Source of the DNA: Auanema rhodensis
Taxonomy: Eukaryota; Animalia; Nematoda
Assembly: GCA_964057225.1 (NCBI GenBank)
Contig: OZ059894.1
Location: forward strand, 4,216,001 to 4,280,000
Reading direction: 5' to 3'
DNA length: 64,000 nt
Shown here in pieces: positions 1-15,700 of the stretch. Position 1 is the stretch's first letter. Every line of letters starts with the position of its first letter. The notes beneath the pieces were generated by a model that was not told the DNA's origin, searched no databases, and saw nothing but the letters and a program-made list of their open reading frames with translations. Both the position numbers and the translations under genes were made by a program.

Positions 1-3000
1 TTTTTGTCAAAATGTTTTTGGAAGCAATGTTGAGTGTACATGGAAACTCAACATACACTAATGCATCATTTTTCAAACGATCATAACTAATTTTTGTATC
101 AAGCGTTTCTTAATGTAGTATAGTGCATTCGATGCGGATTTTTAAGCTGCGTCGATCTGTGTTATCAGATTTGCGCTAGCTTAAAAATGCACCGAGATAT
201 CAACTGATATAAGTTCACACTTATATCCTCGATTTTCACCCTGAAGAATTAACTTTTTCGTTGAATAACATTGTCTATCGTCTTTGCCTTGAAAAATGGA
301 ATCTAAAAACATCTACTATTTGCTAAATTATTTTGAAATTTTTCGAAAAAATTTTTGTCAAAATGTTTTTGGAAGCAATGTTGAGTGTACATGGAAACTC
401 AACATACACTAATGCATCATTTTTCAAACGATCATAACTAATTTTTGTATCAAGCGTTTTTCAATGTAGTATAGTGCATTCGATGCGGATTTTTAAGCTG
501 CGTCGATCTGTGTTATCAGATTTGCGCTAGCTTAAAAATGCACCGAGATATCAACTGATATAAAATCACACTTATATCCTCGATTTTCACCCTGAAGAAA
601 TAATTTTTTCGTTGAATAACATTGTCCATCGTCTTTGCCTTGAAAAATGGAATCTAAAAACATCTACTTTTTGCTAAATTATTTTGAAATTTTTCGAAAC
701 AATTTTTGTCAAAATGTTTTTGGAAGCAATGTTGAGTGTACATGGAAACTCAACATACACTAATGCATCATTTTTCAAACGATCATAACTAATTTTTGTA
801 TCAAGTGTTTCTCAATGTAATATAGTGCATTCGATGCGGATTTTTAAGCTGCGTCGATCTGTGTTATCAGATTTGCGCTAGCTTAAAAATGCACCGAGAT
901 ATCAACTGATATAAGTTCACACTTATATCCTCGATTTTCACCCCGAAGAATTAATTTTTTCGTTGAATAACATTGTCCATCGTCTTTGCCTTGAAAAATG
1001 GAATCTAAAAACATCTACTTTTTGCTAAATTATTTTGAAATGTTTCGAAACAATTTTTGTCAAAATGTTTTTGGAAGCAATGTTGAGTGTACATGGAAAC
1101 TCAACATACACTAATGCATCATTTTTCAAACGATCATAACTAATTTTTGTATCAAGCGTTTCTTAATGTAGTATAGTGCATTCGATGCGGATTTTTAAGC
1201 TGCGTCGATCTGTGTTATCAGATTTGCGCTAGCTTAAAAATGCACCGAGATATCAACTGATATAAGTTCACACTTATATCCTCGATTTTCACCCCGAAGA
1301 ATTAATTTTTTCGTTGAATAACATTGTCCATCGTCTTTGCCTTGAAAAATGGAATCTAAAAACATCTACTTTTTGCTAAATTATTTTGAAATTTTTCGAA
1401 ACAATTTTTGTCAAAATGTTTTTGGAAGCAATGTTGAGTGTACATGGAAACTCAACATACACTAATGCATCATTTTTCAAACGATCATAACTAATTTTTG
1501 TATCAAGCGTTTCTTAATGTAGTATAGTGCATTCGATGCGGATTTTTAAGCTGCGTCGATCTGTGTTATCAGATTTGCGCTAGCTTAAAAATGCACCGAG
1601 ATATCAACTGATATAAGTTCACACTTATATCCTCGATTTTCACCCTGAAGAATTAACTTTTTCGTTGAATAACATTGTCTATCGTCTTTGCCTTGAAAAA
1701 TGGAATCTAAAAACATCTACTATTTGCTAAATTATTTTGAAATTTTTCGAAAAAATTTTTGTCAAAATGTTTTTGGAAGCAATGTTGAGTGTACATGGAA
1801 ACTCAACATACACTAATGCATCATTTTTCAAACGATCATAACTAATTTTTGTATCAAGCGTTTTTCAATGTAGTATAGTGCATTCGATGCGGATTTTTAA
1901 GCTGCGTCGATCTGTGTTATCAGATTTGCGCTAGCTTAAAAATGCACCGAGATATCAACTGATATAAGTTCACACTTATATCCTCGATTTTCACCCTGAA
2001 GAAATAATTTTTTCGTTGAATATTATTGTCCATCGTCTTTGCCTTAAAAAAAGGAATCTAAAAACATCTACTTTTTGCTAAATTATTTTGAAATTTTTCG
2101 AAAAAATTTTTGTCAAAATGTTTTTGGAAGCAATGTTGAGTGTACATGGAAACTCAACATACACTAATGCATCATTTTTCAAAAGATCATAACTAATTTT
2201 TGTATCAAGCGTTTCTCAATGTAGTATAGTGCGTTCGATGCAGATTTTTAAGCTGCGTCGATCTGTGTTATCAGATTTGCGCTAGCTTAAAAATGCACCG
2301 AGATATCAACTGATATAAGTTCACACTTATATCCTCGATTTTCACCCTGAAGAATTAATTTTTTCGTTGAATAACATTGTCCATCGTCTTTGCCTTGAAA
2401 AATGGAATCTAAAAACATCTACTTTTTGCTAAATTATTCTGAAATTTTTCGAAACAATTTTTGTCAAAATGTTTTTGGAAGCAATGTTGAGTGTACATGG
2501 AAACTCAACATACACTAATGCATCATTTTTCTAACGATCATAACTAATTTTTGTATTAAGCTTTACTCAATGTAGTATAGTGCATTCGATGCAGATTTTT
2601 AAGCTGCGTCGATCTGTGTTATCAGATTTGCGCTAGCTTAAAAATGCACCGAGATATCAACTGATATAAGTTCACACTTATATCCTCGATTTTCACCCTG
2701 AAGAATTAATTTTTTCGTTGAATAACATTGTCCATCGTCTTTGCCTTGAAAAATGGAATCTAAAAACATCTACTTTTTGCTAAATTATTTTGAAATTTTT
2801 CGAAACAATTTTTGTCAAAATGTTTTTGGAAGCAATGTTGAGTGTACATGGAAACTCAACATACACTAATGCATCATTTTTCAAACGATCATAACTAATT
2901 TTTGTATCAAGCGTTTCTTAATGTAGTATAGTGCATTCGATGCGGATTTTTAAGCTGCGTCGATCTGTGTTATCAGATTTGCGCTAGCTTAAAAATGCAC

Positions 3001-3916
3001 CGAGATATCAACTGATATAAGTTCACACTTATATCCTCGATTTTCACCCTGAAGAAATAATTTTTTCGTTGAATAACATTGTCCATCGTCTTTGCCTTGG
3101 AAAAAGGAATCTAAAAACATTTAATTTTTGCTGAATTATTTTGAAATTTTTCGAAAAAATTTTTGTCAAAATGTTTTTGGAAGCAATGTTGAGTGTACAT
3201 GGAAACTCAACATACACTAATGCATCATTTTTCTAACGATCATAACTAATTTTTGTATTAAGCTTTTCTCAATGTAGTATAGTGCATTCGATGCAGATTT
3301 TTAAGCTGCGTCGATCTGTGTTATCAGATTTGCGCTAGCTTAAAAATGCACCGAGATATCAACTGATATAAGTTCACACTTATATCCTCGATTTTCACCC
3401 TGAAGAATTAACTTTTTCGTTGAATAACATTGTCTATCGTCTTTGCCTTGAAAAATGGAATCTAAAAACATCTACTATTTGCTAAATTATTTTGAAATTT
3501 TTCGAAAAAATTTTTGTCAAAATGTTTTTGGAAGCAATGTTGAGTGTACATGGAAACTCAACATACACTAATGCATCATTTTTCAAACGATCATAACTAA
3601 TTTTTGTATCAAGCGTTTTTCAATGTAGTATAGTGCATTCGATGCGGATTTTTAAGCTGCGTCGATCTGTGTTATCAGATTTGCGCTAGCTTAAAAATGC
3701 ACCGAGATATCAACTGATATAAGTTCACACTTATATCCTCGATTTTCACCCTGAAGAAATAATTTTTTCGTTGAATATTATTGTCCATCGTCTTTGCCTT
3801 AAAAAAAGGAATCTAAAAACATCTACTTTTTGCTAAATTATTTTGAAATTTTTCGAAAAAATTTTTGTCAAAATGTTTTTGGAAGCAATGTTGAGTGTAC
3901 ATGGAAACTCAACATA
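1..3916. repeat. 351-bp tandem satellite array, left arm (about 11 monomers; continues beyond window start)
   Basis: TTTTTGTCAAAATG recurs at 1, 352, 703 and onward (period 351). Monomers differ only by scattered substitutions. The array stops inside ...CTCAACATA at the retroelement junction. Confidence 0.99.
3912..3916 (+). other. Left target-site duplication ACATA
   Basis: The satellite reads CTCA-ACATA-CACTA, and ACATA flanks the element on both sides. A 6-bp AACATA reading is formally possible if the LTR ends one base earlier. Confidence 0.9.
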
Positions 3917-4234
3917 TGTTTCGTATATTATACGAAATTTAATGAAAGTAACGGAGAAACTATTAAAAAAGTGAGAATTCATTAAATATTAAAATCATCC
4001 TGAAAAGAAATTATTCATTAATCATTTATTCTCATTTGGTTTGAGAAAACCGGTTGAATACGCGTCACGTCATAAGCGCGTGAAATTGACGTAACGAGGA
4101 CTAAAAAGTTATCTTTCAGTTCACATAGTTGGCTCATAGCGCGTAGTCGCATATTTAATAATATATATCGTGATTCATAAAATATTTCTTATAAATAAAT
4201 CATTTTCATTATATTTCGTTTTAATTTCGAGATA
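3917..4234 (+). repeat. 5' LTR (318 bp, TGTTTCG...CGAGATA)
   Basis: Matches 12393-12710 with no difference seen by eye. Contains an Inr-like TCAGTT (4116-4121), AATAAA (4194-4199) and a CGTCAC/ACGT motif cluster (about 4061-4097). Confidence 0.96.
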
Positions 4235-4241
4235 TAAAAAG

Positions 4242-4264
4242 TGGTGCATCGGCCGGGAAACGAA
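4242..4264 (+). promoter_or_regulatory. Primer-binding site copy 1, complementary to the 3' end of tRNA-Gly(GCC), extended into the T-loop
   Basis: TGGTGCATCGGCCGGGAA is the reverse complement of TTCCCGGCCGATGCACCA, the invertebrate tRNA-Gly(GCC) 3' end as I recall it. It is followed by A-CGAA where the tRNA complement would be T-CGAA. Confidence 0.88.
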
Positions 4265-4757
4265 TCTTTTAATTTCGATTTTTTCGTTTTCGATCTTTTT
4301 ATATAAGGTTTTCCATACTGATTGTTGTTTTTCTGGTATTAGTTCGTCCCATCCTATTTTGGAATCCCAAATTTCTTTCAAAAATAACCTTAGTTTTAAT
4401 GTTAGAGGTTGTGTTATACCGAGAGGGTCGAATATTGAGTTTATATAGCTCAAAATTCCTCTTTTGGTTATAGACTTCTCTTCCCATTTGGGTATTTTTA
4501 TTAATAAAACATCTTTTTCACCGTTGTAATGCATTCCTAGTATTTTGAAGCTTGTTTCTTTAATCTGGTCTTTGATTGGGATCATGTCTTTTTGAATTAC
4601 ATCATTAGTATAAAATTCTCTAACGTTCATTCCTATTTTTGAAAATAAATTTTTTACTTCCTCATAAAATTTGAAAATTTGATCTTTATTTTCAATTTTC
4701 AGCATTATGTTGTCCACATAAATGTTTCTTAATATATTTTCTGAGATTTCACTTTTT
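4265..4757 (-). repeat. Inverted copy A of the element's own pol (corresponds to 8832-9324, RT C-terminal half including YVDN)
   Basis: Reverse complement of 8832-9324. ORF 4175..4717(-) translates identically to the polyprotein stretch DNIMLKIENK...KIEIKR. Confidence 0.96.
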
Positions 4758-5494
4758 CTGCATTTTAGTGATGAAAATTAGAACTTGGCGAATTATGTTA
4801 ATGAACTTTGAATACGATGAAAAAGTTTGTGCCAAGAAATCTAAATCTTGATTCTCAGCTGGATTCATTTCAGATTTTAACAACAAAGTCACTATTTTTA
4901 GTTGTGGTTCATCACAATACTTTTCTATAACTTCTTTCAATGTTTTTATGTGCAAATTTCGTTCTTTTTCTGCTTTATACCATTGAGGACCTTCGATCCA
5001 TTGCATATATGTTTCATCGGGTTTTTCTAAACCTCTCGTAGGTAAATCGGCAGGATTAAACTTTGTATTCACATAAAAAAATTCAATTTTTCGGTTTCCT
5101 TGTTCAATTTCGGTTATTAATTCTGTTATTTTGTTCAATCTGTTCCGTATATATATTTTTTTCGTTGGATTCTTATGTAACCAACATAGAACAACTTGTG
5201 AATCAGTGAAAATTTTAATATTTTTGATTTTTACGTTTATTTCTTTGATATTTTCTTTTAACATTTTCATTCCGAAAAGAACAGCAGTTAGTTCTTTCAT
5301 TGGTATGGTTCCTTCAACCATTGTCGATGATTTAGAGCATAAAAAATCTATTTTTTCAATTTTTCCATGAATATTTATACTCATCACATATGCGACGGCC
5401 GCTATGACATCTTTAGACGCGTCAGTGAATAATAAAAATTCATATTTTTGAGATGTATCGCTTGTTTCATCGATAATTGCTCTTTTAATTTCGA
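4753..5494 (-). repeat. Inverted copy B of the element's own pol (corresponds to 9311-10052, RNase H domain)
   Basis: Reverse complement of 9311-10052. ORF 4749..5537(-) translates identically to the polyprotein stretch EIKRAIIDETSD...ITKMQK. Confidence 0.96.
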
Positions 5495-5517
5495 GATATA
5501 AAAAGTGGTGCATCGGC
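5483..5517 (+). promoter_or_regulatory. Second copy of LTR 3' end + spacer + short (12-nt) PBS
   Basis: TTTTAATTTCGAGATATAAAAAGTGGTGCATCGGC is identical to 4219-4253. The PBS part, TGGTGCATCGGC, lies at 5506-5517 and is followed by the gag leader. Confidence 0.93.
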
Positions 5518-5625
5518 AAATCTAGAATCACAAACATAAAAGAAATATCAATTCCAAAAATAAGATCAATTCTTAAACAGAGAATAAACTTATAAAATTA
5601 ATTGGAAAAAAAATTATAAGCTGAA

Positions 5626-8600
5626 ATGAGCAGTCAAGGAAACAAAAATGACAATAGTGCCTATAAATCAGCTATACAAAGAAAAATAAACTGTACATTA
5701 GCAAGAAGAGAAAAAATAAAAATTATTTTCGATTCAGATTTGAACGAAATGGAAGTTTATTTACCAGAAATAAAGGAATACTTAAATTATTTTGTTAGAT
5801 TCATGGAAAGTGTGATTTCTCTCAGAATTGAAGAAGATTTTCCAATTATAAAAGAAAAAGTTGAAAATTCAATCATAATTGAAAACTGGGAAATCATAAA
5901 AAATGAAATATACTTTATTGCGAAAAATATTAATAGTGATATACAAAGCGCTTCACGAGAAGAAATAAAATTATGCATCAGAAATTTCAAATTAAATGAA
6001 AAAGACTTCCTAGAAGCAATAAATCAAAAAGATTTAATCGAAATCGAAGAGGAACCCTCAGATAATGAAGAGGAAACTCAATTTTCTTCAGAAGAAGATT
6101 TAGAATCGGAATACGAAAAGTTATCACAAAGATTCACTCCTACCAACTTCAAAATTAACCAACTTAAAAGCAAACATGCAAAATGTGTGTACCAAACCCC
6201 AATCAAAAAAGGTACACCTAATTTAATAATATCCCCAAGAGCAAAACAAACAGTTCAATATAAAGAAAACGATTTACTATCAAAAATAAAACAATTGACA
6301 AACAATTTAAATGAATTAAAAACGAAATATAATGAAGAAATTGGAAAAACACATAAAAAATGTGTAATACACAAAAGAACAGAAAAGTACGAAAGTAATG
6401 AAGAATATAATACAGAATCAGATGAAGAAAATATATCTTATGGAAAAAACAAACACAAGATCATGAAAAATGAAGGATTCAAACCAAAAATGGAATTACA
6501 AAAATTTGATGGAGAAATCAAAAAATTTAAAGAATTTTACAACATGTTCAAAATGCTCATACATAATAATAAAAAAATAACGAAATTAGAAAAATTATAC
6601 TATCTCAAAACATCACTTACCGGCTTCCCATCACAACTGTTGGAACACATCAGCCTAGAGGCGAACAATTATGCAAAAGCTCTGAAATTGTTAAAAGATA
6701 CGTTTGATAGACCTTACGAAATTAAAAAAGATTTAAAAATGGAGCTTAGTAACGTAAGAAAATCATATAACAACCCAATACATGCAAGAGAAAATTTTTA
6801 TAAAATTAAGTCAATAATATCAGCATTAGAAGAGTACGAAAACGTTGATAATGATGAAATAATAGAAATAATAAAAAGCAAATTTGATATAGAGATCAAC
6901 ACAAAAATATCCGAAATAGAAATAACAGAAAAAAGGAGAATGAACATAGAAGACGTGCTAAAATGCATAGAAATCAAAATAGAAGCAGGAATTGCAGCAA
7001 CAAAAAACAGCAAAAGTGAAAAATATGAGCATAGATCAACAATTAATTTTTTAACAAATTCAAATAAAGAAAGAAAGCCGAAAACAATAAAAAATTATAA
7101 TAGAATGAACGAAAATAATTATAGCCCTACAAAACAAATTGAAAAAACATGCATATACTGTAGAATGGATAATCATGATACGAAATACTGTAGAAAATTG
7201 AAACCAATTAGCGAAAAGCGAAATATTATTATGCAAAACAAAGTATGCTGGATTTGTTTTAGCAAAAAACATTCATCATTCGAATGTAAAGAAAAACCAT
7301 GCGAAATATGCAATGGACGGCATCATCAAAGCATTTGCATAAAAAACCAATATGCTAATGAGCAAACTACACTCAAAAACAACAGAAACGCATATGCTAA
7401 TGAAGGTACCCCAAACCAAAATGAAAGAAAATATTATGCTAATGAAGAGAGGCCAGAAACTTCAACTAACAGGTGGCAATCAAGAACCATTAGGGCAAAA
7501 TTTTCGAATAATGAAAAATGTAATAGAAAAGGGATAATAAGAACTAATCTTTTATCAGAAAATATAAATAACACAGAAAAAAATAGAAATAACACATTTT
7601 TCATATCATTTTTCAAAACTTATCATAAAAATCTAGTAATATTATTCGATACTTGCTCTCATCAATCATTTATAAAAGAAAAAACAGCGAAACTGTTGAA
7701 TTTAAAAATTTTAAACGAAAAATCTTTAAGTATTTCAAGCATAAATAACAATATAAAAAACATATCATCTAGAGAAGTTATGTGGGATATTCCCGAAGTC
7801 AAAAAAGCAGTAAAACTAATGAGTATTGATCAAATTACAAAATATGTTAATATGCCCATATTAAATGAAGAGGATATTAAAGAAATCAAAGCATATAAAC
7901 TAAAAAGTAATACATTATTATTTGAAAAAGGTCTTGTAGAACCAGATATTTTAATAGGAATGGACAATTTCTTCGATTTTGTTCCAAAAACTTTCAAATC
8001 TATTAATATACGTAATGATTTGATTATAATACCAACTATAATACATCCTATTATTGCTCAAAGTGACTGTAATGATAGTAATTCAAAAGAATCCGTTCAA
8101 AACGAAGATATAAGCTGTTTTTTAAACGGAATTAGTTTAAATAATGATAATAAAAAAGCAACTAAAGAAGAAATACGTAAATATGAAGATAAAATGGCTT
8201 GGAAACATTTTTACGATAATGTACAATATGTAAATGATCGAATTAAAGTTAAATTTCCAATAAGACCGGATGTTCAATCAATTAACGATAATTATGGCAA
8301 AAGTATCGGATGTTTGAATGGCATACTGAACACAATGAAAGATAAAACCGATATTTTGATGAAATATAACGAAACAATGATGGAACAAATGAAAACTGGA
8401 ATTCTAGAAATTGCTCCAGAGCAAAATCATCCTTTTTTCACTTATTATATACCACATCATTATGTTTTAAAACTGTCGAGCCTGACTACAAAGCTCAGAA
8501 TTGTTTTAAATGCATCAAGTAAAAAGAAAAATGAAAAATCTCTCAATGACATACTGTATCAAGGTGAAGGCATCATACCAAGTCTTGCAGGCATGCTAAT

Positions 8601-11571
8601 AAGACTCAGAATGAGTAGAAACTTCTTAATAGGGGACATAGAGAAAGCGTTCCACCAAATAGAATTAGACGAAAGTCATAGAGATTTAACAAGAATTTTA
8701 TGGGTGAAAGACATTCACAAAGGAACGCAGAAAAGTAACATTCTAAACTTACGATTTACAAGAATACCTTTTGGAGTGAACAGTTCACCATTTCTATTAG
8801 CAGCAAGCATAATTTATTTTTTAAAAACGGAAAAAAGTGAAATCTCAGAAAATATATTAAGAAACATTTATGTGGACAACATAATGCTGAAAATTGAAAA
8901 TAAAGATCAAATTTTCAAATTTTATGAGGAAGTAAAAAATTTATTTTCAAAAATAGGAATGAACGTTAGAGAATTTTATACTAATGATGTAATTCAAAAA
9001 GACATGATCCCAATCAAAGACCAGATTAAAGAAACAAGCTTCAAAATACTAGGAATGCATTACAACGGTGAAAAAGATGTTTTATTAATAAAAATACCCA
9101 AATGGGAAGAGAAGTCTATAACCAAAAGAGGAATTTTGAGCTATATAAACTCAATATTCGACCCTCTCGGTATAACACAACCTCTAACATTAAAACTAAG
9201 GTTATTTTTGAAAGAAATTTGGGATTCCAAAATAGGATGGGACGAACTAATACCAGAAAAACAACAATCAGTATGGAAAACCTTATATAAAAAGATCGAA
9301 AACGAAAAAATCGAAATTAAAAGAGCAATTATCGATGAAACAAGCGATACATCTCAAAAATATGAATTTTTATTATTCACTGACGCGTCTAAAGATGTCA
9401 TAGCGGCCGTCGCATATGTGATGAGTATAAATATTCATGGAAAAATTGAAAAAATAGATTTTTTATGCTCTAAATCATCGACAATGGTTGAAGGAACCAT
9501 ACCAATGAAAGAACTAACTGCTGTTCTTTTCGGAATGAAAATGTTAAAAGAAAATATCAAAGAAATAAACGTAAAAATCAAAAATATTAAAATTTTCACT
9601 GATTCACAAGTTGTTCTATGTTGGTTACATAAGAATCCAACGAAAAAAATATATATACGGAACAGATTGAACAAAATAACAGAATTAATAACCGAAATTG
9701 AACAAGGAAACCGAAAAATTGAATTTTTTTATGTGAATACAAAGTTTAATCCTGCCGATTTACCTACGAGAGGTTTAGAAAAACCCGATGAAACATATAT
9801 GCAATGGATCGAAGGTCCTCAATGGTATAAAGCAGAAAAAGAACGAAATTTGCACATAAAAACATTGAAAGAAGTTATAGAAAAGTATTGTGATGAACCA
9901 CAACTAAAAATAGTGACTTTGTTGTTAAAATCTGAAATGAATCCAGCTGAGAATCAAGATTTAGATTTCTTGGCACAAACTTTTTCATCGTATTCAAAGT
10001 TCATTAACATAATTCGCCAAGTTCTAATTTTCATCACTAAAATGCAGAAAAATATCGGAAAAACAAGTCAAAATCTGCTTGAGAATTTTTATGAAAAAGA
10101 TACGTTGACAAAAAACAAAATGATTCAACAACTTCTAATAAAATGTCATCAAAACCAAAACAGCAATTTGCTTAAAAAAGAAAAATACAAGAAATTGGAT
10201 ATAATTACAGATGATTCTGGAATATTAAGAGTGCGAGGCCGATTAGGCAACTCAGAAAATAGTAACAAACAGTATCCAATTCTTCTTTTTGGAAAAAAAA
10301 CATTCACTAAACTCATTCTTACTCACATTCATGAGACATCGCTTCATAGTTCGCGAGAAACCATGATGGCAATAGTAAGAAGAGAATTTTTCATCATAAA
10401 ACTTAAAACATGCATAAATACAGTAATTTCAAAATGTTTAAAATGTAAAAAATTAAATAATAGGCCATATAAATACCCAAATTATCCTCAATTACCAAAA
10501 GAAAGAGTCCTAATATATAAACCTTTCGAAAATATAGGTATTGATTACGCCGGTCCGTTATTAGTAAAAACAAATAGTAATTATGACAAGAAGGTTTGGA
10601 TTATGTTAATTACTTGCCTGTGTACACGAGCAGTATATTTGGATTTAGCCAATGATTGCTCCAGTAAAGAATTAACACTAAATCTGAGAAAATTTTTTGC
10701 TCGAAAACGAGTACCAACAAAAATAATATCAGATAACGGCAGTCAGTTTATAAAAACTGATAAAATTCTCGAAACTTTCATTGAAAAAAAGCATGTAAAC
10801 TGGCAAAAAATAACTCCTTATTCACCATGGAAAGGAGGATTTTATGAAAGATTGATTGGAGTAACAAAAAAGTACTTAATAAAAACACTTGGAACAAGAA
10901 CAGTTTATTTCAATGAATTAAGTACAATTTTAACAGAAATTGAAAATATAATAAATTCGAGACCTATATCGTACATACATGACGATTTTGACAAAATAAT
11001 AACTCCTAAAAGTCTAGAGTACTACCATTCAGAAAACCTCATTTGCGAATTCTCGGATAATGCAAAGAAAACAAATTTATCTCAAATTAACGAAATAAAA
11101 GACTGGATGAGTATTTGCAATAGAACTATTTCGGAATTTTGGAGAGAATGGTCTTTAACTTACCTTGAAGAACTAAGAGCATTATCTAACAAGAGTGCTA
11201 TCAACAAAAACTGTAATAAAACAAATCCCAAAGTTGGTGAAATTGTTTTATGCATTGAAAATAACGTAAAAAGACACAAATGGCCACTTGCAATTATTGA
11301 AGAATTGATATATTCGCAAGATGGAGAGATCAGAACCGTCAAAATTAGAAATTCTGAAGGGAATCGATTTCTCAGATCTATTAATCATCTCATCCCTCTG
11401 GAAATATCAGAAAATACACCAAATAACGAAGAAAATCATAGAATAAACAGTGAATCATTGCAAAATCATGAAAAAAGTAATGAACCAAAAAATATAAAAG
11501 AGGATAATCCAGAATTATGGAAAAATAGACTTCGGAATATCGAAAAAATTGACTACACTATGTTCTTTTAG
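5626..11571 (+). CDS. gag-pol: BEL/Pao Gag-Pol polyprotein, 1981 aa (Gag with three Zn knuckles, aspartic protease, reverse transcriptase, RNase H, integrase)
   Basis: Uninterrupted ORF. Gag region KFDGEIKKFKEFY (DUF1759-like). Knuckles CIYCRMDNHDTKYC, CWICFSKKHSSFEC, CEICNGRHHQSIC (about 7150-7338). Protease LFDTCS (about 7645). RT motifs YYIPHH, KLRIVLNAS, DIEKAFHQI, RIPFGVNSSPFLL and YVDN (8869-8880). Pao-type IFDPLG. RNase H FTDAS/ELTA/FTDSQ/NPADLPTRG. Integrase HETSLH..CLKC, IDYAGP, SDNGSQF, GGFYERLIG, and C-terminal FWREWSLTYL/WPLAIIEEL. Confidence 0.97.
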   Translation: MSSQGNKNDNSAYKSAIQRKINCTLARREKIKIIFDSDLNEMEVYLPEIKEYLNYFVRFMESVISLRIEEDFPIIKEKVENSIIIENWEIIKNEIYFIAKNINSDIQSASREEIKLCIRNFKLNEKDFLEAINQKDLIEIEEEPSDNEEETQFSSEEDLESEYEKLSQRFTPTNFKINQLKSKHAKCVYQTPIKKGTPNLIISPRAKQTVQYKENDLLSKIKQLTNNLNELKTKYNEEIGKTHKKCVIHKRTEKYESNEEYNTESDEENISYGKNKHKIMKNEGFKPKMELQKFDGEIKKFKEFYNMFKMLIHNNKKITKLEKLYYLKTSLTGFPSQLLEHISLEANNYAKALKLLKDTFDRPYEIKKDLKMELSNVRKSYNNPIHARENFYKIKSIISALEEYENVDNDEIIEIIKSKFDIEINTKISEIEITEKRRMNIEDVLKCIEIKIEAGIAATKNSKSEKYEHRSTINFLTNSNKERKPKTIKNYNRMNENNYSPTKQIEKTCIYCRMDNHDTKYCRKLKPISEKRNIIMQNKVCWICFSKKHSSFECKEKPCEICNGRHHQSICIKNQYANEQTTLKNNRNAYANEGTPNQNERKYYANEERPETSTNRWQSRTIRAKFSNNEKCNRKGIIRTNLLSENINNTEKNRNNTFFISFFKTYHKNLVILFDTCSHQSFIKEKTAKLLNLKILNEKSLSISSINNNIKNISSREVMWDIPEVKKAVKLMSIDQITKYVNMPILNEEDIKEIKAYKLKSNTLLFEKGLVEPDILIGMDNFFDFVPKTFKSINIRNDLIIIPTIIHPIIAQSDCNDSNSKESVQNEDISCFLNGISLNNDNKKATKEEIRKYEDKMAWKHFYDNVQYVNDRIKVKFPIRPDVQSINDNYGKSIGCLNGILNTMKDKTDILMKYNETMMEQMKTGILEIAPEQNHPFFTYYIPHHYVLKLSSLTTKLRIVLNASSKKKNEKSLNDILYQGEGIIPSLAGMLIRLRMSRNFLIGDIEKAFHQIELDESHRDLTRILWVKDIHKGTQKSNILNLRFTRIPFGVNSSPFLLAASIIYFLKTEKSEISENILRNIYVDNIMLKIENKDQIFKFYEEVKNLFSKIGMNVREFYTNDVIQKDMIPIKDQIKETSFKILGMHYNGEKDVLLIKIPKWEEKSITKRGILSYINSIFDPLGITQPLTLKLRLFLKEIWDSKIGWDELIPEKQQSVWKTLYKKIENEKIEIKRAIIDETSDTSQKYEFLLFTDASKDVIAAVAYVMSINIHGKIEKIDFLCSKSSTMVEGTIPMKELTAVLFGMKMLKENIKEINVKIKNIKIFTDSQVVLCWLHKNPTKKIYIRNRLNKITELITEIEQGNRKIEFFYVNTKFNPADLPTRGLEKPDETYMQWIEGPQWYKAEKERNLHIKTLKEVIEKYCDEPQLKIVTLLLKSEMNPAENQDLDFLAQTFSSYSKFINIIRQVLIFITKMQKNIGKTSQNLLENFYEKDTLTKNKMIQQLLIKCHQNQNSNLLKKEKYKKLDIITDDSGILRVRGRLGNSENSNKQYPILLFGKKTFTKLILTHIHETSLHSSRETMMAIVRREFFIIKLKTCINTVISKCLKCKKLNNRPYKYPNYPQLPKERVLIYKPFENIGIDYAGPLLVKTNSNYDKKVWIMLITCLCTRAVYLDLANDCSSKELTLNLRKFFARKRVPTKIISDNGSQFIKTDKILETFIEKKHVNWQKITPYSPWKGGFYERLIGVTKKYLIKTLGTRTVYFNELSTILTEIENIINSRPISYIHDDFDKIITPKSLEYYHSENLICEFSDNAKKTNLSQINEIKDWMSICNRTISEFWREWSLTYLEELRALSNKSAINKNCNKTNPKVGEIVLCIENNVKRHKWPLAIIEELIYSQDGEIRTVKIRNSEGNRFLRSINHLIPLEISENTPNNEENHRINSESLQNHEKSNEPKNIKEDNPELWKNRLRNIEKIDYTMFF
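7351..7476 (+). repeat. Degenerate 42-bp (14-aa) triple repeat in the Gag-protease linker
   Basis: TATGCTAATGA at 7351, 7393 and 7435, giving YANE three times at 14-aa spacing. Confidence 0.8.
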
Positions 11572-11727
11572 CTATAACAACATTGAATTAAATTAAATTT
11601 TGTAGATGAATAGTGTAGTTTCTAGAATAAAAAAAAAAAAAAAATATATATATATTAATTTTAAATAAAAAGTAATTCAAATTATGTGAAGAGAGTTAAT
11701 CGGTCGTTTTTTTTGCGGCGGATGATT

Positions 11728-11819
11728 CGTGACACGTCATAACGTTACGTGAACGTCACGTAAAGTCACGCAACCAGAAATAGTATATAAAGAAAAGAAT
11801 CTAACAGAAAAATTCATTT
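11728..11819 (+). promoter_or_regulatory. Putative internal Pol II promoter for the 3' accessory gene
   Basis: Cluster of CGTGAC/ACGTCA/GTCACG motifs (11728-11772), TATATAAA at 11784-11791, Inr-like TCATTT at 11814-11819 about 30 nt downstream, then ATG at 11823. Confidence 0.6.
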
Positions 11820-11822
11820 CTC

Positions 11823-12325
11823 ATGAAGGAACAGAACGAAATCATGAATGATTATGAAGAACTACTTCTGGAGGAAGGAATTGAAGAAAACCAAGCAACC
11901 ACCGACAATCTCATAGAAAGAATATCTTTTCTGGAGAAACACGTGGTTACTATGTGTGAAGCACTGAAGAAATTGAATGATATTTACTCTGAAAAACGAG
12001 AGATAAGTAGTAAACAACCAGAAAAGGTATATAATTTAATAATAAACAACTTATAAATAACAAAAAATTATTTAAGAAAGATGGTACATCAACTATAACA
12101 TATAAACCGAAGGCATACTGCAAACTCTGTAAAAAAGAACACAACACCGAAAAATGTTCCCAACATCCATCTAAACTTTCTAAGTTTACCAAAGCAGTCT
12201 CTATGAAGTTATGCTTACTCTGTCTTAACAGACATAAAGGAGATTGCACAAAAGCAAAAATTTGTAAATTTTGTAATTTGAAGCAGTATAATTTTATTAT
12301 CTGCCCATGTACCAAACGAAAATAA
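11823..12325 (+). CDS. Predicted two-exon accessory protein, 150 aa (acidic/coiled-coil-like N-terminus + Cys/His Zn-knuckle-like C-terminus); exons 11823-12026 and 12077-12325
   Basis: Donor AAG|GTATAT at 12027 and acceptor TTTAAG| at 12076 define a 50-nt AT-rich phase-0 intron containing the exon-1 stop. Exon 2 reads KDGTSTITYKPKAYCKLCKKEHNTEKCSQHPSKLSKFTKAVSMKLCLLCLNRHKGDCTKAKICKFCNLKQYNFIICPCTKRK*. AATAAA at 12321 and 12340. Confidence 0.7.
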
Positions 12326-12392
12326 ACATTTTTAAATGAAATAAAATGAATTCTTTCGTGAAACATATTAAAAAACCCGATTCGGGCTGGAA

Positions 12393-12710
12393 TGTTTCGT
12401 ATATTATACGAAATTTAATGAAAGTAACGGAGAAACTATTAAAAAAGTGAGAATTCATTAAATATTAAAATCATCCTGAAAAGAAATTATTCATTAATCA
12501 TTTATTCTCATTTGGTTTGAGAAAACCGGTTGAATACGCGTCACGTCATAAGCGCGTGAAATTGACGTAACGAGGACTAAAAAGTTATCTTTCAGTTCAC
12601 ATAGTTGGCTCATAGCGCGTAGTCGCATATTTAATAATATATATCGTGATTCATAAAATATTTCTTATAAATAAATCATTTTCATTATATTTCGTTTTAA
12701 TTTCGAGATA
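12393..12710 (+). repeat. 3' LTR (318 bp)
   Basis: Direct repeat of 3917-4234, followed by the TSD and resumption of the satellite in register. Confidence 0.96.
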
Positions 12711-12715
12711 ACATA
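12711..12715 (+). other. Right target-site duplication ACATA
   Basis: ...CGAGATA|ACATA|CACTAATGC; the satellite continues exactly where it was interrupted. Confidence 0.9.
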
Positions 12716-15700
12716 CACTAATGCATCATTTTTCAAAAGATCATAACTAATTTTTGTATCAAGCGTTTCTCAATGTAGTATAGTGCGTTCGATGCGGATT
12801 TTTAAGCTGCGTCGATCTGTGTTATCAGATTTGCGCTAGCTTAAAAATGCACCGAGATATCAACTGATATAAGTTCACACTTATATCCTCGATTTTCACC
12901 CTGAAGAATTAATTTTTTCGTTGAATAACATTGTCCATCGTCTTTGCCTTGAAAAATGGAATCTAAAAACATCTACTTTTTGCTAAATTATTTTGAAATT
13001 TTTCGAAACAATTTTTGTCAAAATGTTTTTGGAAGCAATGTTGAGTGTACATGGAAACTCAACATACACTAATGCATCATTTTTCTAACGATCATAACTA
13101 ATTTTTGTATTAAGCTTTTCTCAATGTAGTATAGTGCATTCGATGCAGATTTTTAAGCTGCGTCGATCTGTGTTATCAGATTTGCGCTAGCTTAAAAATG
13201 CACCGAGATATCAACTGATATAAGTTCACACTTATATCCTCGATTTTCACCCTGAAGAATTAACTTTTTCGTTGAATAACATTGTCTATCGTCTTTGCCT
13301 TGAAAAATGGAATCTAAAAACATCTACTATTTGCTAAATTATTTTGAAATTTTTCGAAAAAATTTTTGTCAAAATGTTTTTGGAAGCAATGTTGAGTGTA
13401 CATGGAAACTCAACATACACTAATGCATCATTTTTCAAACGATCATAACTAATTTTTGTATCAAGCGTTTTTCAATGTAGTATAGTGCATTCGATGCGGA
13501 TTTTTAAGCTGCGTCGATCTGTGTTATCAGATTTGCGCTAGCTTAAAAATGCACCGAGATATCAACTGATATAAGTTCACACTTATATCCTCGATTTTCA
13601 CCCTGAAGAAATAATTTTTTCGTTGAATATTATTGTCCATCGTCTTTGCCTTAAAAAAAGGAATCTAAAAACATCTACTTTTTGCTAAATTATTTTGAAA
13701 TTTTTCGAAAAAATTTTTGTCAAAATGTTTTTGGAAGCAATGTTGAGTGTACATGGAAACTCAACATACACTAATGCATCATTTTTCAAAAGATCATAAC
13801 TAATTTTTGTATCAAGCGTTTCTCAATGTAGTATAGTGCGTTCGATGCGGATTTTTAAGCTGCGTCGATCTGTGTTATCAGATTTGCGCTAGCTTAAAAA
13901 TGCACCGAGATATCAACTGATATAAGTTCACACTTATATCCTCGATTTTCACCCTGAAGAATTAATTTTTTCGTTGAATAACATTGTCCATCGTCTTTGC
14001 CTTGAAAAATGGAATCTAAAAACATCTACTTTTTGCTAAATTATTTTGAAATTTTTCGAAACAATTTTTGTCAAAATGTTTTTGGAAGCAATGTTGAGTG
14101 TACATGGAAACTCAACATACACTAATGCATCATTTTTCTAAAGATCATAACTAATTTTTGTATTAAGCTTTTCTCAATGTAGTATAGTGCATTCGATGCA
14201 GATTTTTAAGCTGCGTCGATCTGTGTTATCAGATTTGCGCTAGCTTAAAAATGCACCGAGATATCAACTGATATAAGTTCACACTTATATCCTCGATTTT
14301 CACCCTGAAGAAATAATTTTTTCGTTGAATAACATTGTCCATCGTCTTTGCCTTGAAAAATGGAATCTAAAAACATCTACTTTTTGCTAAATTATCTTGA
14401 AATTTTTCGAAACAATTTTTGTCAAAATGTTTTTGGAAGCAATGTTGAGTGTACATGGAAACTCAACATACACTAATGCATCATTTTTCAAACGATCATA
14501 ACTAATTTTTGTATCAAGCGTTTCTTAATGTAGTATAGTGCATTCGATGCGGATTTTTAAGCTGCGTCGATCTGTGTTATCAGATTTGCGCTAGCTTAAA
14601 AATGCACCGAGATATCAACTGATATAAGTTCACACTTATATCCTCGATTTTCACCCTGAAGAAATAATTTTTTCGTTGAATATTATTGTCCATCGTCTTT
14701 GCCTTAAAAAAAGGAATCTAAAAACATCTACTTTTTGCTAAATTATTTTGAAATTTTTCGAAAAAATTTTTGTCAAAATGTTTTTGGAAGCAATGTTGAG
14801 TGTACATGGAAACTCAACATACACTAATGCATCATTTTTCAAAAGATCATAACTAATTTTTGTATCAAGCGTTTCTCAATGTAGTATAGTGCGTTCGATG
14901 CGGATTTTTAAGCTGCGTCGATCTGTGTTATCAGATTTGCGCTAGCTTAAAAATGCACCGAGATATCAACTGATATAAGTTCACACTTATATCCTCGATT
15001 TTCACCCTGAAGAATTAATTTTTTCGTTGAATAACATTGTCCATCGTCTTTGCCTTGAAAAATGGAATCTAAAAACATCTACTTTTTGCTAAATTATTTT
15101 GAAATTTTTCGAAACAATTTTTGTCAAAATGTTTTTGGAAGCAATGTTGAGTGTACATGGAAACTCAACATACACTAATGCATCATTTTTCTAAAGATCA
15201 TAACTAATTTTTGTATTAAGCTTTTCTCAATGTAGTATAGTGCATTCGATGCAGATTTTTAAGCTGCGTCGATCTGTGTTATCAGATTTGCGCTAGCTTA
15301 AAAATGCACCGAGATATCAACTGATATAAGTTCACACTTATATCCTCGATTTTCACCCTGAAGAAATAATTTTTTCGTTGAATAACATTGTCCATCGTCT
15401 TTGCCTTGAAAAATGGAATCTAAAAACATCTACTTTTTGCTAAATTATCTTGAAATTTTTCGAAACAATTTTTGTCAAAATGTTTTTGGAAGCAATGTTG
15501 AGTGTACATGGAAACTCAACATACACTAATGCATCATTTTTCAAACGATCATAACTAATTTTTGTATCAAGCGTTTCTTAATGTAGTATAGTGCATTCGA
15601 TGCGGATTTTTAAGCTGCGTCGATCTGTGTTATCAGATTTGCGCTAGCTTAAAAATGCACCGAGATATCAACTGATATAAGTTCACACTTATATCCTCGA

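Follow-up and report, generated by a model that had tools for sequence, protein, structure and literature searches.

A recent Bel/Pao insertion in Auanema rhodensis with a permuted antisense copy of its own pol, a probable product of derailed reverse transcription

A 64,000-nt stretch of contig OZ059894.1 of Auanema rhodensis (GCA_964057225.1), referred to here as the window and providing the position numbers used below, contains what is, judged by its structure, a Bel/Pao LTR retrotransposon that has very recently been inserted into a satellite array. A block of antisense pol lies between the 5' LTR/PBS and an uninterrupted gag-pol ORF, and it is likely that the cDNA of this copy was put together wrongly in a single round of reverse transcription. 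An origin in a single retrotransposition event, as proposed in the initial annotation, is well supported by a relic of the tRNA primer, a duplicated U5/PBS segment, junctional microhomologies, LTRs that do not differ and are flanked by a 6-bp target duplication, and the perfect match of the block to the element's own pol. The features are as follows.

3911–3916, no strand: left copy of the target-site duplication, AACATA, within the 351-bp satellite; the same hexamer follows the 3' LTR
3917–4233, plus strand: 5' LTR, 317 bp, identical to the 3' LTR
4234–4241, plus strand: 8-nt spacer between LTR and PBS, the same in the canonical copy L002
4242–4253, plus strand: PBS copy 1, 12 nt, the family's normal PBS, in common with the 3' end of tRNA-Gly(GCC)
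4254–4264, plus strand: primer over-read, 11 nt beyond the PBS, complementary to tRNA-Gly 64–54, with A for T opposite position 58
4265–4757, minus strand: antisense arm A, exact reverse complement of pol 8832–9324 (inverted-repeat pair; Peptidase_A17 match)
4753–4757, no strand: junction J2, 5-nt microhomology TTTTT, common to both antisense arms
4753–5494, minus strand: antisense arm B, exact reverse complement of pol 9311–10052 (inverted-repeat pair; Peptidase_A17 and RT_RNaseH)
5483–5494, no strand: junction J3, 12-nt microhomology between the reverse complement of pol 9311–9322 and the U5 end
5483–5517, plus strand: second U5 end (15 nt), 8-nt spacer and 12-nt PBS, identical to 4219–4253 and followed by the normal leader
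5518–5625, plus strand: normal leader without AUG, from comparison with the canonical copy and the AUG count
5626–11571, plus strand: uninterrupted gag-pol ORF of 1981 aa, Bel/Pao type by its domain matches
8832–10052, plus strand: sense RT-RNase H interval (8832–9324 and 9311–10052), partner of the antisense block
12393–12709, plus strand: 3' LTR, exact repeat of the 5' LTR
12710–12715, no strand: right copy of the target-site duplication, repeating AACATA

The single ORF encodes, in this order, DUF1759 (gag), DUF1758, RVT_1, Peptidase_A17, integrase and DUF5641, in agreement with the Pao-type order of pol domains (protease, RT, RNase H, integrase) and the Peptidase_A17 signature; the domain search returned Peptidase_A17 with an E-value of 2e-39, besides RVT_1, Integrase_H2C2, rve and DUF5641. 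The structural hallmarks of the group are likewise present: the LTRs are in direct orientation, the target duplication measures 6 bp, and the PBS beside the 5' LTR is complementary to the 3' end of a tRNA, its match to tRNA-Gly(GCC) extending to the CCA, which the tRNA gene does not encode. The two LTRs show no differences, and the exact run extends over 319 nt (3916–4234 and 12392–12710). Apart from the element, the satellite runs uninterrupted for at least 55 kb, and its phase is unbroken across the element (spacing 9150 = 351 + 8793 + 6). A canonical copy of the family, L002 (C6:1412928–1420471), consists of LTR, 8 nt, 12-nt PBS and leader without the block, and is likewise flanked by a 6-bp target duplication (AATGTT); its length of 7.54 kb agrees with the approximately 7.53 kb that had been predicted for copies without the block.

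An inverted-repeat search showed 4265–4757 to be 100% complementary to 8832–9324 over 493 nt, and 4753–5494 to be 100% complementary to 9311–10052 over 742 nt, lengths which preclude chance matches. The block had been described as the reverse complement of pol 8832–10052, with junctions at 4264/4265 (J1), 4753–4757 and 5483–5494. The coordinates of the junctions are all correct and the arms are exact, but the block is not one contiguous stretch: its two arms are arranged in circularly permuted order, running from 9324 to 8832 and then from 10052 to 9311, so that the same 14 nt occur at both of its ends (4265–4278 and 5481–5494). Microhomology amounts to 0 nt at J1, 5 nt at J2 and 12 nt at J3. 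Compared with the element's own pol, the block shows no difference in 1235 nt, while other copies diverge in arm A. Minus-strand ORFs at 4175–4717 and 4749–5537 were considered as separate genes and rejected, being just RT-RNase H fragments of the inverted block.

The sequence preceding the block carries the signature of the primer. Alignment to the tRNA-Gly genes L017–L019 of the same genome identified 4242–4264 as a 23-nt reverse complement of positions 76–54 of mature tRNA-Gly(GCC), with a sole mismatch at position 58. Complementarity after the LTR thus reaches past the family's PBS and past position 58, comprising 23 nt as compared to 12 nt in the canonical copy, which has plain leader sequence at the place of the over-read. 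Plus-strand strong-stop DNA evidently missed the stop before tRNA position 58 and extended over 23 nt of the tRNA-Gly primer, with a wrong base inserted opposite position 58 on the way. The m1A58 modification of primer tRNAs is generally conserved and acts as the plus-strand stop, with position 54 as a second stop (PMC8599865). The A opposite position 58 recurs in two further relics (L011/L021 and L006), making three independent relics altogether; by analogy with the conservation of m1A58 (PMC8599865), and from the A for T at the three relics, we assume that position 58 of tRNA-Gly is m1A-modified in A. rhodensis.

Three other loci, belonging to two or more families, show the same succession of tRNA relic, antisense pol and second PBS. 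At L001, antisense pol follows a relic of 41 nt; the copy at C3:4021–4029 kb (L014, the C3 copy) combines a relic of 74 nt and 128 nt of antisense pol with a J3 junction identical to that in the window; and at L020, 2.4 kb of antisense pol from another family stand behind a relic of 42 nt. At L021, a 45-nt relic precedes an internal deletion. Both L020 and the C3 copy are chimeras between families. The J3 junction of the window copy recurs letter for letter at C3:4028198–4028391. Over the 4.65 kb compared, none of the variable sites unites the window copy with the C3 copy, which makes two separate origins of J3 at the 12-nt homology probable. A common ancestor bearing J3 was rejected as the simpler reading on this ground and because the block does not differ from the pol of its own copy, and the 12-nt homology would recreate the junction each time. 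The two copies are inserted at the same satellite position. This might be taken as a sign of segmental duplication, but a stretch of about 45 bp of the satellite monomer has received five insertions, from two or more families, which points to a target preference.

Since the PBS of the family comprises only 12 nt, the over-read 3' end could not have performed the normal second strand transfer. It is established that minus-strand DNA can prime itself and that the second transfer depends on the PBS (PMC6088434). In the sequence of events that we propose, the minus strand would have passed the PBS and entered the U5 end, whereupon its 3' end would have snapped back on its own pol via the 12-nt complementarity and copied from 9323 to 10052. 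A jump to 8832 via the 5-nt homology, with copying up to 9324, may have followed; this end point lies 14 nt inside the duplex that would just have been synthesised, and a stop at this place would explain the permutation by one turn plus 14 nt. A homology-free jump onto the end of the over-read strong-stop DNA would have been the last step. The product, bounded by two perfect LTR ends, underwent normal integration. We infer this order of template switches from the final sequence only, and a plus-strand-centred order could yield the same product. Moreover, the antisense pol of L020 derives from a different family, for which pure self-snap-back cannot account.

Any transcript from the 5' LTR into pol would comprise both strands of the RT-RNase H region, as had been pointed out in the initial annotation, since the arms lie on one strand together with their sense partners. 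Such LTR-driven RNA would contain perfect intramolecular duplexes of 493 and 742 bp, with computed energies of –805 and –1244 kcal/mol. The further claim that the copy keeps its full coding capacity holds at the DNA level, where the ORF is intact, but not beyond it: the insert adds 19 AUGs to a leader normally devoid of AUG, extending it to 1.39 kb, and the RT-RNase H coding region would be paired. The AUG-rich leader and the duplexes should cripple translation of the window copy itself, and the copy should be a source of dsRNA if transcribed. None of the listed sequencing runs that contain the stretch is an RNA run, and sequence words of the locus were next to absent from three possible RNA runs of the species, which is no proof of silence. 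Premature polyadenylation caused by the antisense block was also considered, but the AATAAA motif alone is uninformative, as three occur in the block and 26 in the sense interior.

That the locus acts as a functional killer, the transcript from the 5' LTR folding and being diced into small RNAs, amplified by nematode RNA-dependent RNA polymerases, that silence the whole family in trans, is compatible with an origin by reverse transcription but appears unlikely. An inverted duplication with perfectly complementary arms does lie downstream of an intact 5' LTR, inside a single possible transcription unit, and inverted duplications of transposable elements are known as silencers (Slotkin et al. 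2005, as cited in PMC11624286). The family is tiny, the 5' end of gag being retained at only three of its loci, the majority of its loci are rearranged, several with inverted segments, and the genome search revealed no daughter copies with J1 or J2. However, many other causes may underlie a low copy number, and the insertion, whose LTRs have not diverged, is too young to account for the decay of older copies. The locus may also be silent chromatin, as it alone interrupts the satellite. Endogenous hairpin RNAs of wild-type Caenorhabditis elegans are edited by ADAR and excluded from RNAi (PMC7084138), so silencing by a hairpin is not automatic. Any silencing role of the window copy is possible but unproven, and an incidental dead-end copy is the default reading.

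With respect to the origin of the block, we consider it rather improbable that the pieces were joined as DNA instead of by reverse transcriptase. Host repair might have end-joined dead-end cDNAs, i.e., a duplex of LTR, PBS and tRNA relic with partial cDNAs, before integration, or a replication-based template switch might have rearranged a normal insertion later. The microhomologies at J1 and J2, 0–5 nt in length, are what end joining typically leaves, a mixture of free cDNA fragments would easily explain the inter-family chimeras L020 and C3, and end joining of cDNA fragments could yield the same product as template switching. A rearrangement after integration, however, would create neither the tRNA relic nor the duplicated U5/PBS; the recurrent 12-nt J3 and the geometry of one turn plus 14 nt favour annealing-primed synthesis over the ligation of random ends, and the LTR ends are intact on both sides, with a normal target duplication.

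Support for the junctions was sought in public data, using assembled short-read contigs of four runs (X1, X3, X4 and X9). Contigs of X9 break exactly at 4265 and 5494, with extra depth over J1 and no break at J2, whereas those of X1, X3 and X4 follow the normal pol path only, with no extra depth at J1 or J3. The X9 signal at J3 might derive from the C3 copy. The block shares with the pol of its own copy a private T, at 4469, where the contigs of all four runs have G. The contigs also hint that three of the four public samples lack the insertion. Read support is partial and, coming from assembled short-read contigs only, suggestive but not decisive. Creation of the inverted block by a chimeric or fold-back long read, or by a mis-join of family copies, is nevertheless scarcely credible: such an artefact would likewise give arms of 100% identity, and J2 has no visible short-read-contig support, with three of the four runs showing the normal path only, but an assembler cannot place 11 nt of tRNA sequence, mismatched at position 58, exactly behind the PBS, nor a second U5/PBS copy joined via 12-nt homology, J3 and the layout as a whole recur at loci on other contigs, one clean insertion of 8793 bp accounts for both the target duplication and the phase of the satellite, and the X9 contigs break precisely at the outer ends of the block. 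The relic, the second U5/PBS, the identical LTRs, the duplication, the satellite phase and the canonical copy without the block argue for one derailed reverse transcription rather than an assembly error.

As a product of derailed reverse transcription, the window copy documents a failed second strand transfer base by base, with the over-read end, the wrong base at position 58 and three switch junctions. Such intermediates are normally visible only in test-tube and cell-culture work on retroviruses; in A. rhodensis they are germline-fixed, and four or more loci, from two or more families, carry records of failed transfer. From this it seems that the combination of a 12-nt PBS with copying of at least 18 nt of the tRNA makes these elements error-prone. 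LTR retrotransposons are normally without inverted repeats (PMC7084138), and the process would naturally give rise to retrotransposon loci with hairpin-forming or antisense sequence. Provided that they are transcribed, these loci would reveal how an animal with amplifiable RNAi can begin to silence LTR retrotransposons. In a broader, decidedly speculative reading, to which we attach a low probability, tRNA over-reading would be a regular failure of short-PBS Bel/Pao elements that plants heritable dsRNA or antisense triggers and so immunises the genome: cDNA would be diverted into integrated copies with antisense pol, from the own family or a co-packaged one, directly behind an active LTR, and triggers would be planted at each burst of activity. 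The window copy would be the clearest case, as its block pairs with its own uninterrupted pol.

No description of a tRNA relic followed by antisense pol in an LTR retrotransposon was found in our partial coverage of the literature, which leaves its novelty unproven. Several known systems share individual traits with the window copy. LINE-1 elements acquire 5' inversions by twin priming, an aberrant priming event in reverse transcription, so that the copy is born with an inverted 5' segment, as the window copy would have been; LINE-1, however, has no LTRs and is copied where it inserts, and its inversion replaces sequence and forms no hairpin, whereas in the window copy the sequence is duplicated. 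In maize, the Mutator family is silenced by Mu killer, a MuDR fragment in inverted duplication (Slotkin et al. 2005, as cited in PMC11624286). Mu killer resembles the window copy in that a transposon-derived inverted duplication in one potential transcript may give a long hairpin RNA homologous to an active family. It is, however, a fragment of a DNA transposon, rearranged as DNA, with a flanking promoter and no coding capacity, and its silencing activity has been demonstrated; the inversion of the window copy, a putative silencer, lies inside an otherwise complete LTR retrotransposon, is probably a product of reverse transcription, and would have the element's own LTR as promoter. In Arabidopsis, a nested antisense self-insertion of EVD is a candidate hairpin trigger (PMC11624286), and this locus, like that in the window, combines sense and antisense of its own LTR-retrotransposon sequence and is proposed to start silencing; it consists of two separate insertions, one nested, with LTRs in opposite orientation, while the window copy is a single element with one LTR pair and an internal antisense pol segment. 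The failure of HIV-1 strong-stop synthesis at m1A58 (PMC8599865) is similar in that synthesis passes position 58 into the primer tRNA, and the extra 3' tail no longer fits the PBS required for second strand transfer. The second stop of HIV is located one nt before position 54, whereas the relic in the window includes position 54 and ends after it; the HIV-1 work, performed in vitro and in cell culture, described loss of infectivity and no integrated rescue products, in contrast to the germline-fixed outcome joined to antisense pol seen here. In retroviral self-priming (PMC6088434), the nascent minus-strand 3' end folds back and is extended to give an inverted copy, as proposed for the window copy. 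There, the TAR hairpin of strong-stop DNA leads to dead-end products in vitro, while the fold-back proposed here would have used a 12-nt complementarity between U5 and pol, 3.8 kb away, and the resulting copy was completed and integrated.

The antisense block lies in an LTR retrotransposon whose coding domains identify it as a Bel/Pao element:

3917-4233 and 12393-12709, LTRs, identical to each other
5626-11571, gag-pol ORF of 1981 aa with DUF1759, DUF1758, RVT_1, Peptidase_A17, integrase and DUF5641 domains

Among four copies compared, this is the only one with an uninterrupted gag-pol frame. It is flanked by a 6-bp target duplication (AACATA) and is the sole interruption of a 351-bp satellite, which makes up 86% of the window and is back in phase beyond the element (spacing 9150 = 351 + 8793 + 6). 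Two minus-strand ORFs within the block are merely inverted fragments of the RT-RNase H (RT-RH) region; another minus-strand ORF, of 138 aa, lies between pol and the 3' LTR (11950-12366; also 11823-12325).

A repeat search over 3000-14000 reproduced the coordinates and junctions of the block proposed in the initial annotation. Arm A (4265-4757) pairs with 8832-9324 over 493 nt and arm B (4753-5494) with 9311-10052 over 742 nt, both inverted and 100% complementary. The block had been described as an apparently exact reverse complement of pol, which is true of each arm but not of the whole: its order is 9324 to 8832, then 10052 to 9311, i.e., a circular permutation of a 1221-nt interval, with an identical 14 nt at both ends (4265-4278 and 5481-5494). 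Microhomology amounts to 0 nt at the left junction J1 (4264/4265), 5 nt at J2 between the arms (4753-4757), and 12 nt at the right junction J3 (5483-5494).

An 8-nt spacer separates the 5' LTR from 4242-4264. This stretch is the reverse complement of positions 76-54 of mature tRNA-Gly(GCC), as compared with three 71-nt tRNA-Gly genes of the same genome, in which CCA is not encoded; the sole mismatch is an A instead of T opposite position 58. The canonical copy at C6:1412928-1420471, which at 7.54 kb has the length predicted for family members lacking the block (about 7.53 kb), matches the tRNA for 12 nt only and then continues into the leader, so that the window copy's additional 11 nt represent copied primer. 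On the right-hand side of the block, the terminal 15 nt of U5 occur a second time together with the spacer and the 12-nt primer-binding site (PBS), at 5483-5517, and the normal leader and gag come after them. The U5 end (4219-4230) is perfectly complementary over 12 nt to pol 9311-9322; this complementarity, which may be fortuitous or reflect a functional long-range contact in the RNA, served as switch point in two independent rearranged copies.

Products of the same class were found at other loci of the genome:

L001, C6:850126-857822, LTR, 41-nt tRNA complement, correct at position 58, then antisense pol 10730 to 10675
L014, C3:4021-4029 kb, complete 74-nt tRNA copy and 128 nt of antisense pol ending at 9311
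L020, C5:18636500-18646499 (element 617-9320), a different Bel/Pao family with identical 232-nt LTRs
L021, C5:16259500-16269499, minus strand, element of 3.9 kb with an internal deletion; its 293-nt LTRs are identical

In L001 the unit of LTR, relic and antisense pol is repeated once, and the 5' end of gag is absent. L014 has a J3 identical to that of the window copy, followed by PBS, leader and gag, and its 5' LTR derives from another family; the 3' LTR breaks off at position 253, where it meets an inverted U5 end starting exactly at the PBS-adjacent base. No variable site in the 4.65 kb compared groups this copy with the window copy, and two separate origins of J3, each at the 12-nt homology, are most likely. 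In L020, a 42-nt tRNA-Gly relic precedes 2382 nt of antisense pol (903-3284) with an open frame of 794 codons on the minus strand; a second 12-nt PBS and the element's own gag-pol come next. Since this antisense segment shares 99% identity with a third family and only 66% with the element's own pol, L020 is an inter-family version of the layout seen in the window copy. The 45-nt tRNA-Gly relic of L021, with A opposite position 58, adjoins the RNase H-integrase part of pol, an arrangement suggestive of an ectopic plus-strand transfer. At C6:14146044-14146117 and C3:4028397-4028470, U5 ends of LTR elements are directly adjoined by full-length (74-nt) copies of mature tRNA-Gly with its CCA; the whole primer tRNA was reverse-transcribed in these cases.

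Part of the L014 locus (C3:4019000-4028999; C3:3989930-4024923) is amplified as tandem repeats of about 7754 bp, at least five units in number. At C3:4130630-4138436, two inverted partial copies of the window copy's family form a large palindrome, at whose centre (about C3:4134746) pol 8634 abuts pol 9058 with the orientation reversed. The primer tRNA gene is unusually amplified: the tRNA-Gly(GCC) 3' end has 513 occurrences genome-wide, most of them in dense arrays (C6:9.6-9.8 Mb, C6:10.57 Mb, C4:17.55-17.59 Mb). The 22-nt SL1 leader, queried with the C. elegans sequence, has 1267 copies genome-wide in tandem arrays of 252-bp period (e.g., C3:6741531-6768501 and beyond), which confirms a nematode as the host. 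Comparison of 3880-3916 and 12710-12750 with the flanks of other copies showed that five young insertions, from at least two Bel/Pao families (the window copy, L001, the canonical copy L002, L014 and L020), share the 351-bp satellite as target and lie no more than about 45 bp apart in the monomer, at or beside a 9-bp palindrome (ATGTTGAGT ... ACTCAACAT); this clustering suggests a satellite-specific integration preference.

Most words of 3850-5750 are present in nine public DNA runs from three studies; no RNA run was found among those matching. When these 1901 nt were compared with assembled contigs of four runs, contigs of three (X1, X3, X4) continued through the J1 and J3 positions as normal pol, with junction-bin depth at the level expected from normal pol alone. 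Contigs of the fourth (X9) begin exactly at 4265 and stop exactly at 5494, with extra depth over 4234-4297. These ends fit branches at J1 and J3, the latter signal possibly stemming from L014; no break at J2 was seen in the four runs. It is thus possible that only one sample or lineage carries the window insertion. The case for its structure comes mainly from internal evidence beyond what an assembler could produce, and the antisense block is confirmed as real.

The block and its own pol show no difference in 1235 nt, whereas arm A differs from other copies by 1-2 nt; at position 4469 the window has T and the contigs of all four runs have G. Since the window copy carries eight private differences over 4.65 kb, yet none between its LTRs or between block and pol, block formation and insertion must be recent and would most simply be a single event. 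Origin in one retrotransposition, as the initial annotation had proposed, is thus well supported by the tRNA relic, the identical LTRs and the identity of the block to its own pol. Neither J1 nor J2 was found at any other locus of the genome; the copy therefore has no known daughters.

In retroviruses, the strong stop of the plus strand lies one nucleotide before m1A58, with a second stop at position 54; over-running the stop leaves a 3' tail that fails to pair in the second strand transfer (PMC8599865, PMC6088434). Minus-strand DNA is known to prime itself by folding back, as a side reaction (PMC6088434). From the junctions we infer the following order of template switches. The minus strand would have been extended through the PBS into the U5 end, its 3' end pairing with the 12-nt complement within its own pol and 9323 to 10052 being copied. 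A switch via the 5-nt homology to 8832 would follow, and forward copying would displace 14 nt of the duplex just made; a stop there would account for the block's length of one full turn plus 14 nt. A homology-free jump to the 3' end of over-read strong-stop DNA would complete the product. A plus-strand-centred order of events could also give the block, as could end joining of cDNA fragments. The foreign pol in L020 shows that such events can draw on nucleic acids from more than one element.

An RNA beginning in the 5' LTR would contain both strands of RT-RH, as had been predicted, and the expected duplexes of about 490 and 740 bp correspond to the perfect intramolecular 493- and 742-nt pairs across the RT-RH coding region, with computed energies of -805 and -1244 kcal/mol. 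The claim that the copy keeps full coding capacity holds for the reading frame, but the leader is 1.39 kb long with 19 AUGs, as compared to 107 nt and none normally, and together with the duplexes this is likely to impair translation and replication. Long dsRNA is a substrate of Dicer and of ADAR. In wild-type C. elegans, however, editing of endogenous hairpins keeps them out of RNAi (PMC7084138), so that silencing by the putative dsRNA is plausible, not automatic. On present evidence, the proposed function as a hairpin 'killer' locus is less likely than an incidental dead-end copy.

Inverted repeats are normally absent from retrotransposons (PMC7084138), and in the literature searched, with partial coverage, no description of a tRNA relic with antisense pol as a recurring layout was found. 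We rate the layout as belonging with two known kinds, namely aberrant products of reverse transcription and inverted-repeat transposon loci.
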